Shown in pieces: positions 33,347-47,475 of a stretch of DNA of 64,000 nucleotides; within the stretch, counting starts at the first letter, position 1, and every line of letters starts with the position of its first letter. Under the pieces are notes generated by a model. The model saw only the letters and a list, made by a program, of their open reading frames with translations, was not told the origin of the DNA and ran no database searches. The DNA comes from Pavona decussata (lineage: Eukaryota): NCBI GenBank assembly GCA_977016875.1, contig CDRNST010000104.1:2728001-2792000 (forward strand). The letters run 5' to 3'. A program made the position numbers and the translations under genes.

Positions 33347-36300
33347 TTACAAAGAGAACCCGAGATCCACTGTCTGTCCAGGCTCCAAACGTACAATATG
33401 GGTGTGCTGCCTAGGCGCGCCATATCGGCCAGCGGAAACAGCGTAACTGCCAGGCGCTACTTCTACTTGGACGTCTTCCATTCTCTGAAGCTTGAAGAGG
33501 AAGTTCAAAGGTCAGATTGAATTTCACCACAGCCAGGTTGTCCCTGGACTCATGAACTCAACGAATTTTCACTTCTAACGAACACATTTTCAAGCCTTAG
33601 TTACAAAAAAGAACATAAGGGGTACTCAGTACAAAATCTATGTACATATAGCTTTGGCGCAAAAAAGCCCCTCAAACTCATACTATGAGCAACTTAGAAG
33701 CCGGCAAGATTGAGCTCCTTGAATCTAGAGCACATATCCCCAAGTCGCTGAAAAAGGATGCAAGCATCACTGGGGTTGCTGGAGTTGCTGCAAGATCGTA
33801 GAGCTGTTTCAAAAATCATGGCAATTATTTCGTTCGGAAGGTGGTCAAATAAACATTTCTCTTTGCTTCTTCTTTTCTGATTATCATTCTCATACTGATT
33901 CTCGTATATGCCATGGGAAACGCCCTCTTTTACTGTTTGGTCCTCTCTGCTGGTTCCACCATTCGTTTTGTTTTCTCTTTTGTCATTATTTTTGTCGGCT
34001 TTCTCCGTCTCGTTTTCTGCTTCACTCCATACTTCCTGGTTCTCTTGCATTTCATTGAAACAGGTTTCAGCGGCATTCTCCTGTACCTCTAGGCAAGCAC
34101 ACATAATGCTCCCCTTGCCCTTCTGCAAAGAATCCCAGGTTGAAATCGAAATTCGTAGGTTGGATTTATAACAAAATGCTGTACCTATATTGCACAATGC
34201 GCACATTATTGCAAAATGCCGCAATCGTTATTACAAAACGCGTAACTTATTACAAAATGCCGCAGAACAACGACATTTGAAAGTTTACGACCAGTGACCG
34301 TGTGGCATTTCCCCCACATATCGATAACTCGTTCATTGCGTATGGACGCATTTGCGAGTTAAAAGGGACTTCTTGTAGTTTTTAAGACTAATGCAAGAAG
34401 AACGTTCAAAATAATAAAACTACTTACTGGGTGTCTTCGAGTAGCTAAGTTATAATCTGGCTGATGGAATCTGTTGCAGTGATGCGCATCCTGGGAATTA
34501 CATTCCTCTTTCGATCTGCAGCTGAAATAACGCTGGGGAAATGAAAAGAGTTCTGTAGTTTTCATTGGCGCTGAACACAAGTCTGGAAACAAACTGCATG
34601 TAGGCAAATGGGATGATTGTAGGCTCAAATCCTTTCATGCATTTGCATCAATCCCTACTTGACCAAACTGCACAATGATTTAATTTTCTTGAACTACATT
34701 GTAAGTGGCAAATCACTGCCTAAAGGCAGCAAAATCTCTAACTCTTGGTTTATTTTTAGAAGACTGCAATGTGTTGTTGTCAATAACATAAATGGAGATA
34801 TGTCCAGGAATGCATGCTTAATATGGGATGCAAGAACTGTATGATATGTACACATCACAAGGTGTCCCCTAACCTTAAAGTCTTACCAAAACACAAACAA
34901 TTCTGTCAAACATGAAGCCAGATGAAAGTGAATGAAAAGGTCTGTCTTATATAAAGAACCCCAATTCAGGGTTAAGTGTAGGGGAGGAAGGTTGGGAAAT
35001 ACCAGTAATTATTCCCTGGCTCAATTTAGCAATTCTCCACCCTGAGTTTCAAAATATAGATCCATATCAAAATTCATTCCCAAGGGATTGGGAATGATGG
35101 TATTAATTCAAGGGTTTTGGGCAAGACTCATAAATGCCTTTTTGGGCTTCAAATTCAAATTGTTGAATGAGTGCCATAACTCAAATGAACTGTTTCTACT
35201 AAGCTATGTAAGTTCGCTTAACAAAACTAATATCGTAATTTAAGTCAAAAATATATTTTGTATTCAAAAAGACATCCAGTTATAATGTACATAACATTTG
35301 TATTTCAAACTGCAGTGCTGTGTTAAGTTGTGCGTACTTGGTCTTTCAAAGGGGACTAAATCTATTGCAAAATACAGATGTTCTAAAAATGTTTTAAAAG
35401 TTGCAAAACAAAAATGTGTTAAGATTACTGGTGATACAATTTTGGAAATATGTAAAAGTTCTATTTTTAGTCTGATATACATGTAGTGTATGGTGAAAGA
35501 GGTAAATATCTTAGTCCTTCGCTCTCTTGACTTGTCATTCACAGTTACTGAGATGCAAGTGTAAAGGCTTGTTGAGTTAGAAAAAACGAAACTAATCTAA
35601 ATAGGTTGAGATTGTAGAAAAACTGAAAATAAAATGATGGAGGAAGTTGTGTTTACAAGACTTGGGAGATTGTTTCTTAAGAATATTATTATTACACCTA
35701 AAATGAAAACGGTCCAAGCTCAAGGCACCCCATTTCATAAAACAAATTAATGAAACGTCTGGCTGGGGAACATTTTGTTTTGGCAACATGTAGTTAACAG
35801 ACCTGTTACAAGCCACTGAGCTACAGAGCTACATTCTAAAAAGTTAGTCTCAAGCACCAAAGTGGTCAGGAGGGGCAAGACAACTGCACCTCATCAAGTG
35901 TTTACAGTAGCTTACCTTACACTGCCGACTTGTAACATTCATGTATTGCAGCACCGTGTCAAATGCATCCTCTATTGTGGTGTGTACTTTAGGCTCCTAC
36001 AGACAACAGCCAAAAAACTGCTTTATAGCATTTTTCATAAATGTGAGACACATTTTATTTAGCAATTATTAAAACACTTGAAATTTTTACCGTCCGGAGT
36101 AGTTACCATTCAGGAAGCCCTGTACAGGAAATGGCATATGAAACTGGCATGTTGTGAGGGAGTTAGTTACTTTGACTCAAGAAGTTAACATACCAGTAAA
36201 CAAATCAGCTCAAGACATTCTACAATCATGATAAAATCATGACTCTTACATAGGAAGCACAATACAGTGTTAACATGAGATCAGGCATCATAAGGATGGT

Positions 36301-45132: not shown

Positions 45133-47475
45133 AAAGAGAGGTGTCCCCTCTGACCTCTCACCTGACACTGTGATTCTTGTGTTGGTATCGTTTTCCCAAA
45201 CCACTACTCCTTTAGTTTACACTAACCATCCTCTAACGTTTGAATTCATTTCCAATTTTCAAGACAACAAATTCAACACTGGTTCAGATGGTAACTGGCA
45301 ACCTGAGCACGCCGGTACTAAAGTCCAGCGGTCTTCCAATTGGGAGGATGGCCTGGGTCATGGCGACATTGAGAAAAACAGGAAAGAGAAGAAACGACTG
45401 GAAACAAAAAGAGATGCAAACGAGAGATATCACGCGAAAATAGCCAGAGATTCTGCGGAAAAACGGCAGAAAGAACAGGCGAGACAAGACTACCATAGGT
45501 AAGTTATATTCCGAGAGCAATGTGCTTGCTTCGTATTGAGGGAGCGAGACTTACTTTAAGTGGACTTGGCGCGCTTTTCATTCAACCGTAAGGTTCGGTT
45601 CATCCAGTTGAAATACAAATGAAACGAGCAAATCAGACCTAAATTTTCAGGAATAACCGAACGAACTTCAGGGGTGCACGAGTTTTTCATTTCTGTCACG
45701 GATATTACAGCTCATTTGCACGAAATGTCCCTTACATCACGTGAGCTATTTTATCTACCAATGAGATTGCAAGTTTGCAACTGAAAACGAGGTTGTTTGC
45801 CCAATGGCAAAGCCTTACCTTCTGACTCGGCAAGTTTCTGGCATTTCCAACCGAAGCTACATGTTACAAATGGAAAGCACCCCAACCAGGTGGTTTCCCA
45901 TCCCACCCCTACCCCTTTGTCACTGATTACCCTCAGGTCTAACAAGAAGGAAGCCTGAGATCTCTCGATGAATTTTTTTCAGATTTTTTGTTCTCACCAA
46001 CATTTTTGTTGCCAAAGCCCGTAGGACAATTTCTCATCACACCAGTCTGTAATTATTATTATTATTATTTTTTTTTTTTTTTGCCGCCAAGGTCTTTCTT
46101 GTAATAAACGTACCAGTGCAGTTCTAGGAGAACCCCCCCCCCCCCCCAAAGTGAATGAGAAAACTAACGATGAAGTGTTCAAGGTGCACTGATTGTAAGA
46201 TTGTTGAGTGCAATGCCCAACGACCGCAATGAAAAAATCATGTTTCGCTGTTTGTAGAAAAATGGTTGATGATCGAAATCGGCAACTTGTCGAACAGTCG
46301 GCCGAGAAAACACGCCAAGAAAGCGACAGAATGGAGGGTAAAAGACAAGCAACTGAAAAGGTTTGCCAAAAGGAACGAGAGAGACAAGAAAAGGCCGAGA
46401 CATGGAAACACTCGAGGATAGAAACCATGAAAGAACGGAGAACACAACACGAAGAAATGGAGAACAGTTATGAGCGAGCCGCACAGGAATACGAGTCGCA
46501 AAGACTGGTAAGTAACGAAAGAAATCCTTCAACTTTGTATACGCAAAAACAAAACTTATGAGCGCTAATGCAAAAGCTGTGTGTGGCTAGCGTTGCTTTA
46601 GGGACGATTTCGTTCTATCCGGCTTTCTTTCCTTTTTTTTTTCTTTTTGTTCAAGCGTGAGATAATTGACTGATTAGGTTATTCCAGGTTGTGTTCAAAA
46701 TGCAGCCAACCGCTTTTAGAGTTTCACTGAGAGATTGGCGAAATGACGTTACTGTGAATATTCCAAAAGTTAATGTCAAGTGGAGCAGGGGTGTACTACT
46801 GTGACGTAAGCACTCTCCTCCCACTAATGTGGCCTGGGTTCCATTGACGCTACCGGTATCATATTTGTGTTAAGTTCATTATTGGTTCTCGTTTTTGCTC
46901 CGAGAGGCTTTTCTCCCTTACTCCGATTTTTCCTTCTCCTCAAAACCAATCCTCATTCCAATTCGACCTGGAACGTACGGACTCGTATTGAAGGAGTTCC
47001 TGGGAGCTGCAAGATGCTCCGTGGATAAAAGATTACATTTACAACTCAAACCCTTATAATTTTATGCGCTTTACACTCGATCCACATAAACGTTTTTCAC
47101 ATTTTAAACACAGCCATTTGTTACTTTTACTTTCAAACGTTTTCGGACTTGGTATTTTACTAATATTCAATTTTTGTTAACGAAATACAGTTCGATACGC
47201 CAATGTCGGGAAGATAAATGAAAACAATCTTCATTTTCTTTTGTTTTCAGAATGCGTACAAGGATCGTGAACAGCGAAGAGTGGATTCTCACCATGATAG
47301 ATTAGTGAGCGAAAGGAGAATGGAGCATGAAAGAGACGAACAGATGAAACAACGTGAAATGGATCGACAGACGAGAATAGACAAGATAAAAAGCACTGCA
47401 GAACGAAGGAAAGAACTGAGAATTCACGTGAAACAACAAAATGAACAGAAATATAGAGCAAGTATTCTTCCATGA
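40385..47475 (+). CDS. C11orf16: vWA + DUF4537 protein with repeat region and charged helical tail (C11orf16-like, VWA3B-related); join(40385..41419,41918..42137,42545..43006,43582..43818,44276..44416,45264..45498,46258..46507,47251..47475), ~934 aa
   Basis: vWA MIDAS VFLLDTSGSM...TNTMEAL...IYLVTDG; DUF4537-like VLARKDSDGLFY...GDKVLAPW...RYGPGTVLDG...VAFYNG...VAVRIP; all junctions GT-AG and in phase. Confidence 0.82.
44886..45131. mobile_element. MITE family ggacggtgcctacta; other copies at ~52204-52584 and ~62780-63099
   Basis: ggacggtgcctactaat / aatagtaggcaccgtcc; the internal block gcagatcttagcaagg(c/g)ctatt is shared between copies. Confidence 0.7.
46782..47043 (+). mobile_element. tRNA-derived SINE with V-domain-like core; deleted copy at 54712-54830 (-)
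   Basis: Decayed tRNA head (ggagcagggg...gcactctcctcccac.aatgtggcctgggttc) followed by ttggttctcgt...ctccgagagg.ttttctcc...ctccgattttt. Confidence 0.65.

Follow-up and report, generated by a model that had tools for sequence, protein, structure and literature searches.

The closest described counterparts of the locus analyzed here, a head-to-head pair formed by AKIP1 and a gene of the C11orf16 family in a stony coral, are the conserved ancestral microsyntenic pairs (CAMPs) of Irimia et al. 2012 (PMC3514665), the AKIP1-C11orf16 neighborhood of vertebrates, and bidirectional promoter pairs such as HSPD1-HSPE1. The coral pair lies in a window of 64,000 nucleotides (C104:2728001-2792000 of the 602-Mb genome G000), by which we mean the whole stretch of DNA that was analyzed, and all positions given below are those of the window. 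Like the CAMPs, it consists of unrelated genes that are neighbors in both Cnidaria and Chordata, with short intergenic gaps and varying orientation; in contrast to them, it is found in two major lineages only, is absent from five of the sampled lineages, and has the partner on opposite sides. The vertebrate pair, represented by the whale shark (L013), brings the same two families together, with AKIP1 proteins of 156 amino acids in the coral and 161 in the shark, but the vertebrate and amphioxus pairs are convergent whereas that of the coral is divergent. With HSPD1-HSPE1 the coral pair shares divergent transcription from 5' ends less than 1 kb apart (298 bp in the coral); unlike HSPD1-HSPE1, its 5'-5' layout is not kept outside the corals, and its shared regulatory elements are presumed. 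The VWA3B and VWA3A proteins resemble the product of the C11orf16-family gene in possessing a VWA_3-type domain, and VWA3B also in possessing DUF4537, but they differ in architecture and fall in separate clades in both of the trees described below. Most likely, the pair is a fairly ordinary, further example of an ancient gene neighborhood that has undergone a change of orientation.

AKIP1 (A-kinase-interacting protein 1) binds the N-terminus of the PKA catalytic subunit (PMC5526564). One paper gives AKIP1/C11orf16 as a single 11p15 locus. In the literature searched, the two genes were linked only in lists of shared loci, their synteny was untreated, and no function was published for C11orf16.

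Gene model and identity of AKIP1

The RNA evidence consists of contigs from four probable RNA runs that were placed on the window, and comparisons were made with two related coral species (loci L002 and L003). Spliced RNA contigs from the four runs define a minus-strand gene of five small exons at 33347-40008, with a coding sequence of 471 nt that is in frame and encodes 156 amino acids:

39912 to 40008 or beyond, minus strand: exon 1, 5' untranslated region (UTR) and first 13 coding bases, ATG at 39924-39922; the 39912-39710 joint was found in four runs.
39582 to 39710, minus strand: exon 2, 129 nt, RNA joints on both sides, GT..AG.
35916 to 35995, minus strand: exon 3, 80 nt, RNA joints.
34428 to 34532, minus strand: exon 4, 105 nt, RNA joint 34532/35916 and a loose end at 34428.
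33347 to 33490, minus strand: coding part of exon 5, stop codon at 33347-33349, matched by the RNA loose end at 34428.

Along the plus strand, the introns bounded by the RNA joints (34532/35916, 35995/39582, and 39710/39912) read CT..AC, equivalent to GT..AG in the direction of the gene. The RNA contig that ends loosely at 34428 runs on into minus-strand sequence ending at 33490, the upstream limit of exon 5. At the other extreme of the gene, contigs from two runs stop at 40008. On the basis of RNA contig size, the 3' UTR would extend to about 32456, provided that it is unspliced. The ATG at 39924 and the splice donor of exon 1 are invariant in the three corals, and the second codon differs at its third base only, which is a synonymous change.

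The exon 2 peptide is 86% identical in L002 and 74% identical in L003. The exon 3 peptide (26 amino acids) is 100% identical in L002 and L003 and shares 62% and 55% identity with the AKIP1 proteins of amphioxus and whale shark, respectively. Exon 4 is 47% identical to amphioxus AKIP1 across the entire exon, and exon 5 is 49% and 47% identical to the AKIP1 proteins of amphioxus and whale shark, respectively. Most of the exon matches to these two species cover the full or nearly full exon, and the exon limits agree with those of the annotated genes where matched (exons 3-5 in amphioxus, exons 3 and 5 in whale shark), which encode proteins of 162 and 161 amino acids, respectively. The Pfam family PF27911 (AKIP1) is supported by precomputed matches rather than by a direct profile scan of the window: the family was recorded on the open reading frames (ORFs) P0313 and P0314, which are 98% identical to exon 5, and also on the orthologous AKIP1 exons of L002 and L003. 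Because the spliced RNA contigs, the PF27911 matches, and the exon-wise matches to annotated AKIP1 concur, we regard the identity as settled and, judging from sequence, the minus-strand gene is the coral AKIP1 ortholog, as the initial annotation had held. The gene is single-copy in the coral genome. A look-up of exon 5 in the ESM Atlas placed the AKIP1 cluster third with a value of 0.76, under the accepted level, and was not used.

The introns of AKIP1 contain known and probable repeats. In two short stretches, at 38180-38384 and 34780-34979, the summed depth of the contigs is very high and there are numerous loose ends as well as strand-switch joints; these are probably expressed dispersed repeats, not exons. 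A 42-bp tandem repeat of 3.6 copies with an 82% match occupies 38993-39141 in intron 2, and an inverted stretch related to it is present at about 39408-39457.

Model of the C11orf16-family gene

The second member of the pair is transcribed from the plus strand and runs from an ATG at 40385 to a stop codon at 47473-47475, with about 8 exons encoding about 940 amino acids. An RNA contig of 2696 nt from this gene begins at 40307, and eight blocks conserved with L002 and L003 join by canonical splice sites to give a frame-consistent model of 936-949 amino acids:

40307 (or earlier) to 41419, plus strand: exon 1, 5' UTR, ATG at 40385, donor at 41419 or 41429; vWA domain at about 40463-40927 and DUF4537 from about 41354.
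41918 to 42137, plus strand: exon 2, acceptor at 41918 or 41922; middle of DUF4537 (Pfam positions 45-83 or 25-83), conserved in L002 and L003.
42545 to 43012, plus strand: exon 3, end of DUF4537 and linker; conserved block with frame-consistent splice sites.
43582 to 43842, plus strand: exon 4, donor at 43818 or 43842; conserved with L002, frame-consistent.
44276 to 44416, plus strand: exon 5, conserved in L002 and L003, frame-consistent.
45264 to 45498, plus strand: exon 6, charged tail rich in K, E, and R; conserved in L002 and L003, GTAAGT donor.
46258 to 46507, plus strand: exon 7, charged tail; conserved in L002 and L003, GTAAGT donor.
47251 to 47475, plus strand: exon 8, last coding exon, stop codon at 47473-47475; aligns with the final 65 residues of the Ptychodera ortholog.

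The Pfam matches in exon 1 are VWA_3 at 1e-10 and positions 1-28 of DUF4537, and the protein encoded by this exon shares 91% and 78% identity with those of the two related corals. A related-coral protein, P0008, served as a proxy for the window gene (91% identity over exon 2 and 87% over exon 1); exon 3 was matched in tblastn searches by P0008 and by proteins of Lingula, Ptychodera, and amphioxus. Sequence conservation with L002 and L003 does not extend past the stop codon. The coral genome has one copy of the gene, and the orthologs in Lingula, Ptychodera, and amphioxus have 920-1000 amino acids.

The interval between the two genes

The initial annotation had described AKIP1 beside a C11orf16-like gene in head-to-head orientation across a 460-bp interval. 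The coordinates and strands were borne out: the genes are transcribed divergently, and the distance from ATG to ATG is exactly 460 bp. Two features of this interval enter the argument:

40009 to 40306, no strand: gap of 298 bp between the RNA 5' ends (contig ends at 40008 and 40307), presumed bidirectional promoter.
40281 to 40291, plus strand: 11-mer TGCATGGCAAC, RFX half-site-like, 16 bp upstream of the RNA contig start of the C11orf16-family gene.

The contig depth between the ATGs is fully explained by the AKIP1 exon 1 contig and the contig of the C11orf16-family gene, and the RNA contig ends place the divergent 5' ends less than 1 kb apart. The 40009-40306 region has a GC content of 37%, is not depleted of CpG, and includes blocks that are conserved in the three corals. 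On the basis of the short distance and the conserved blocks, the two genes very probably share a bidirectional promoter region in corals.

The 11-mer TGCATGGCAAC is invariant in the window, L002, and L003 although its flanks diverge, and it occurs once in the window, where 0.03 matches would be expected by chance. Neither the coral promoters nor the regions 5' of the bilaterian orthologs yielded a full X-box (at least 13 of 14 positions), save for matches at chance level, and the only sequence like TGCATGGCAAC upstream of the bilaterian orthologs was one related 8-mer in Ciona. The putative RFX half-site is offered as a lead only.

Placement of the plus-strand gene in the C11orf16 family

An exhaustive search with HMMER yielded two tiers of proteins. 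Those of the top tier have about 600-1400 amino acids and a single N-terminal vWA domain followed by DUF4537; its named members are Branchiostoma "C11orf16", Rhincodon "C11orf16 homolog", and Polyodon "C11orf16-like", and it also includes uncharacterized proteins of Lingula, Ptychodera, Saccoglossus, Acanthaster, Patiria, Antedon, Ciona, and cephalopods. The second tier is made up of VWA3A/B proteins with internal vWA domains. The bit scores were bimodal, with values of 120-210 for the C11orf16 type versus 105 or less for the others.

Trees of the two domains and a profile of DUF4537 gave concordant placements. In the vWA tree (124 rows), the window sequence was found in a 36-row clade made up of these N-terminal-vWA proteins, the named Rhincodon, Polyodon, and Branchiostoma members among them (Shimodaira-Hasegawa approximate likelihood-ratio test, 98). 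Both vWA domains of VWA3B (1 and 2) and those of the VWA3A-like type were in other clades. The DUF4537 profile built for the C11orf16 family scored 78 bits with window exon 2 alone, 146 with P0008, and 153 with wallaby C11orf16; the same profile yielded at most 27 bits for VWA3B and at most 39 bits for the other DUF4537 loci of the coral. In the DUF4537 tree, VWA3B and these other coral copies were on long separate branches, and two vertebrate paralog clades (P0072, P0303, and P0312 versus P0099, P0208, P0212, and P0222) were both nested in one vertebrate clade. The true C11orf16 clade comprises whale shark, paddlefish, frog, caecilian, gecko, and wallaby; the second, labeled "C11orf16-like" or "trichohyalin-like", comprises fishes, amphibians, reptiles, and birds, with no mammal in the sample. 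Since the two paralog clades lie inside one vertebrate clade, the coral gene is placed by the trees as a pro-ortholog of the C11orf16 family that is co-orthologous to both vertebrate paralogs. The proposal that the vWA gene is C11orf16 and not VWA3B agrees with the domain trees and the DUF4537 profile. The orthology that had been claimed stands at the level of family membership, but a one-to-one relationship with mammalian C11orf16 was not found in the DUF4537 tree.

The other DUF4537-like loci of the coral are spread over at least four contigs (C24, C275, C80, and C226; L004-L009), are in some cases arranged in tandem (C24 and C275), and are very divergent from the C11orf16 type.

Synteny across animals

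The neighborhood was surveyed by reading the annotation within 10 kb on either side of each C11orf16-family gene and then by tblastn with the coral AKIP1 exons. The following arrangements were found, with the strand in parentheses:

Two related corals (L002 and L003): AKIP1 (-), then the vWA gene (+); divergent, as in the window.
Whale shark (L013): C11orf16 (+), then AKIP1 (-); convergent, 4.4-kb gap.
Amphioxus (L016:6627-26393): NDUFB2 (-), C11orf16-like gene (+), AKIP1 (-); AKIP1 convergent, 6.8-kb gap.
Ptychodera, a hemichordate (L012:6624-17651): PRDM (+), NDUFB2 (-), C11orf16-like gene (+), KCNQ (-).
Lingula, a brachiopod (L014:7201-15279): PRDM (+), small gene (-), C11orf16-like gene (+), Bcl-2 (-).
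Acanthaster, a starfish: C11orf16-family gene flanked by MFS and rapsyn genes.
Ciona: C11orf16-family gene flanked by HECT and SNF genes.
Batillaria, a snail: region upstream of the C11orf16-family gene without annotation.

Among these deeply diverged lineages, adjacency was seen in the three corals, amphioxus, and whale shark, and was not seen within 10 kb in the other five. Wherever the two are paired, AKIP1 is carried by the strand opposite to that of the C11orf16-family gene, but relative to that gene it occupies the 5' side in corals and the 3' side in chordates. The convergent order of amphioxus and whale shark corresponds to that of the human genes, which we take to be tail-to-tail at 11p15.4. 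The initial annotation had suggested that the pair stayed adjacent despite a reorientation. The part of this that concerns orientation holds insofar as the chordate pairs are convergent, matching that human layout, but no simple flip is involved, AKIP1 having changed sides; likewise, adjacency is found at both ends of the comparison but not in five intermediate lineages.

In two bilaterians, a different gene occupies the 5' side. NDUFB2 is head-to-head with the C11orf16-family gene in amphioxus (gap of 710 bp) and in Ptychodera (641 bp). The small minus-strand gene located 784 bp upstream in Lingula shows a weak match to Ptychodera NDUFB2 (48% over 31 amino acids, E value of 1e-5), and the head-to-head partner in that species is probably NDUFB2 as well. 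The coral NDUFB2 is on a different contig, C123. NDUFB2 and the C11orf16-family gene may form a conserved bidirectional pair of bilaterians.

History of the pair

We consider it probable that AKIP1 and the C11orf16-family gene were closely linked ancestrally and that local rearrangement and repeated loss followed. The linkage would be older than the cnidarian-bilaterian split. Because AKIP1 swaps sides, being 5' in corals and 3' in chordates, more than a single flip would be needed, and the later local reshuffling could have consisted of two inversions or one short transposition; the linkage would then have been lost in several lineages. Of the published conserved pairs whose human layout is other than 5'-5', only 15-25% fully retain their orientation across species (PMC3514665). 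The pair looks like a passive remnant and not like a unit kept by a shared regulatory element, since the sole shared element seen, the coral promoter, is impossible in the convergent chordate layout.

Several points weigh against an ancestral linkage read from these data. Neither annotation nor tblastn revealed AKIP1 within 10 kb of the C11orf16-family gene in Ptychodera, Acanthaster, Lingula, Batillaria, or Ciona. Given that NDUFB2 occupies the 5' head-to-head place in amphioxus and Ptychodera, and probably in Lingula, that arrangement is probably the bilaterian state, and the coral layout was probably not that of the bilaterian ancestor. Selection of the pair was post hoc, out of a scan of the whole genome, and we roughly estimate that each genome comparison would turn up a handful of such coincidences by chance if genes shuffle within conserved chromosomes. 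As for the coral locus itself, the exon junctions of the C11orf16-family gene were deduced from conservation and splice sites and not read from RNA, and the contig ends only approximate the transcription starts.

Many of these facts would also be expected if the two genes had been juxtaposed independently in the coral lineage and the chordate stem, perhaps aided by a shared ancestral chromosome, such that the adjacency carries no ancestral signal. The difference in side and orientation (5' and divergent in corals, 3' and convergent in chordates), the five sampled intervening lineages without adjacency, the head-to-head position of NDUFB2 in amphioxus, Ptychodera, and probably Lingula, and the post hoc selection of the pair all speak for such a history. 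Opposed to it are the compact intervals in all three groups and the low expectation for any named pair, for which we estimate a chance adjacency of roughly 1e-4 genome-wide and about 2e-3 within one chromosome. In addition, about half of some 600 published pairs are older than bilaterians, and pairs genuinely conserved between cnidarians and bilaterians, which run into the hundreds, far outnumber chance ones (PMC3514665). On balance we judge independent juxtaposition to be unlikely, though it retains real weight.

An extension of the ancestral-linkage reading is that NDUFB2, the C11orf16-family gene, and AKIP1 once formed one tight cluster, which is whole in amphioxus. Corals would have kept the AKIP1 side as a shared promoter, and the vertebrate paralogs may have split the neighbors between them after the genome duplications. 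We regard this version as quite unlikely. If it were true and the linkage were selected, it would hint that an uncharacterized vWA/tandem-Tudor protein is functionally tied to a PKA-binding adaptor and to a subunit of complex I.

A further alternative is that selection, through co-regulation or a common pathway, keeps the pair together and that the ancestral, functional arrangement survives in the bidirectional promoter of corals. The 298-bp spacing of the 5' ends, with blocks conserved in the three corals, and the occurrence of both genes in the same RNA runs are compatible with this view, as is the enrichment of 5'-5' pairs with gaps of less than 1 kb among conserved pairs (PMC3514665), which we counted in its favor. 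However, the chordate pair is convergent and has no shared promoter, the bilaterian gene shares its promoter side with NDUFB2 instead, adjacency is gone in five lineages, and the literature searched shows no functional link between AKIP1 and C11orf16, such that maintenance by selection appears very unlikely. Finally, the notion that the plus-strand gene is an ortholog of VWA3B or VWA3A and not of the C11orf16 family is scarcely credible: VWA3B, too, contains both vWA domains and DUF4537, and the search gave significant matches to VWA3A/B proteins (E values of 1e-36 to 1e-39), but VWA3B has two vWA domains at about residues 160-700 and a C-terminal DUF4537 at about 1057-1183, whereas the coral protein has one vWA domain (residues 27-181) and then directly DUF4537 from residue 324, and the vWA and DUF4537 trees, with strong support, and the bimodal bit scores all part the coral gene from VWA3A/B.

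Protein architecture and predicted fold of the C11orf16-family protein

The coral protein is composed of an N-terminal vWA domain, DUF4537 (PF15057), and a long tail rich in K, E, and R. The residues of the metal ion-dependent adhesion site (MIDAS; DxSxS, T, and D) are retained without exception in the coral protein and the invertebrate orthologs examined, from coral to amphioxus. In contrast, the MIDAS is degraded in the C11orf16 homologs of shark and paddlefish and is absent in a turtle paralog, and wallaby C11orf16, the single mammal sequence considered, has DUF4537 at residues 83-221, which leaves no room for a vWA domain; vertebrates also differ from the coral in possessing the second paralog. 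This series suggests that the vWA domain was lost stepwise in vertebrates.

An AlphaFold model of DUF4537 was generated with residues 307-452 of P0008 as the target (equivalent to about 41354-42690 of the window) and a 30-sequence alignment, and reached a pLDDT (predicted local distance difference test) value of 90. Its two small beta barrels are accompanied by a helix. Foldseek matched the model to the tandem Tudor/Agenet structures of 53BP1, ADCP1/AGDP1, BAHCC1, SETDB1, and SGF29, with E values of about 1e-5 and template modeling scores up to 0.62. DUF4537 is predicted with high confidence to be a tandem Tudor/Agenet-like double barrel. With such a domain composition, the protein would be a scaffold that binds proteins in a metal-dependent manner and also carries a Tudor-like reader module.

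Surrounding genes and other features

The order of genes in the window is a CISD-type gene (-), a plus-strand ORF, a copine gene (-), AKIP1 (-), the C11orf16-family gene (+), and an M28/transferrin-receptor-like peptidase gene (-). The plus-strand ORF that follows the CISD-type gene is without a Pfam match and is SLC9B-like in our own reading only. A broader proposal is that the CISD2-SLC9B pair and the AKIP1-C11orf16 pair might both stem from a single old block connecting human 4q24 with 11p15. A run of N is found at 8981-9118. One additional ORF is situated within the limits of the AKIP1 gene:

33694 to 34224, minus strand: ORF of 176 amino acids in AKIP1 intron 4, outside AKIP1, with no Pfam family.

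This ORF is missing from the spliced AKIP1 contigs and from L002 and L003, and copies with 59-79% identity on contigs C250, C76, and C90 make it a member of a small multi-copy family. Its F-box-like appearance was without Pfam support, and that assignment was rejected.

Significance of the pair

The locus adds one more ancient neighborhood, with RNA-supported gene models in a coral, and its importance is modest. It shows that a neighbor pair can remain adjacent while exchanging side and orientation. The family architecture, the DUF4537 fold, the two vertebrate paralogs, and the NDUFB2 pairing are side results of some value, though unsurprising. For the uncharacterized human C11orf16 the comparison provides a context: the ancestral form would have been a protein of roughly 900-1000 amino acids in which a predicted metal-binding vWA domain was followed by a tandem Tudor-like DUF4537 and then by a charged tail, a form that persists from corals to sharks, though with a degraded vWA metal site in the shark.

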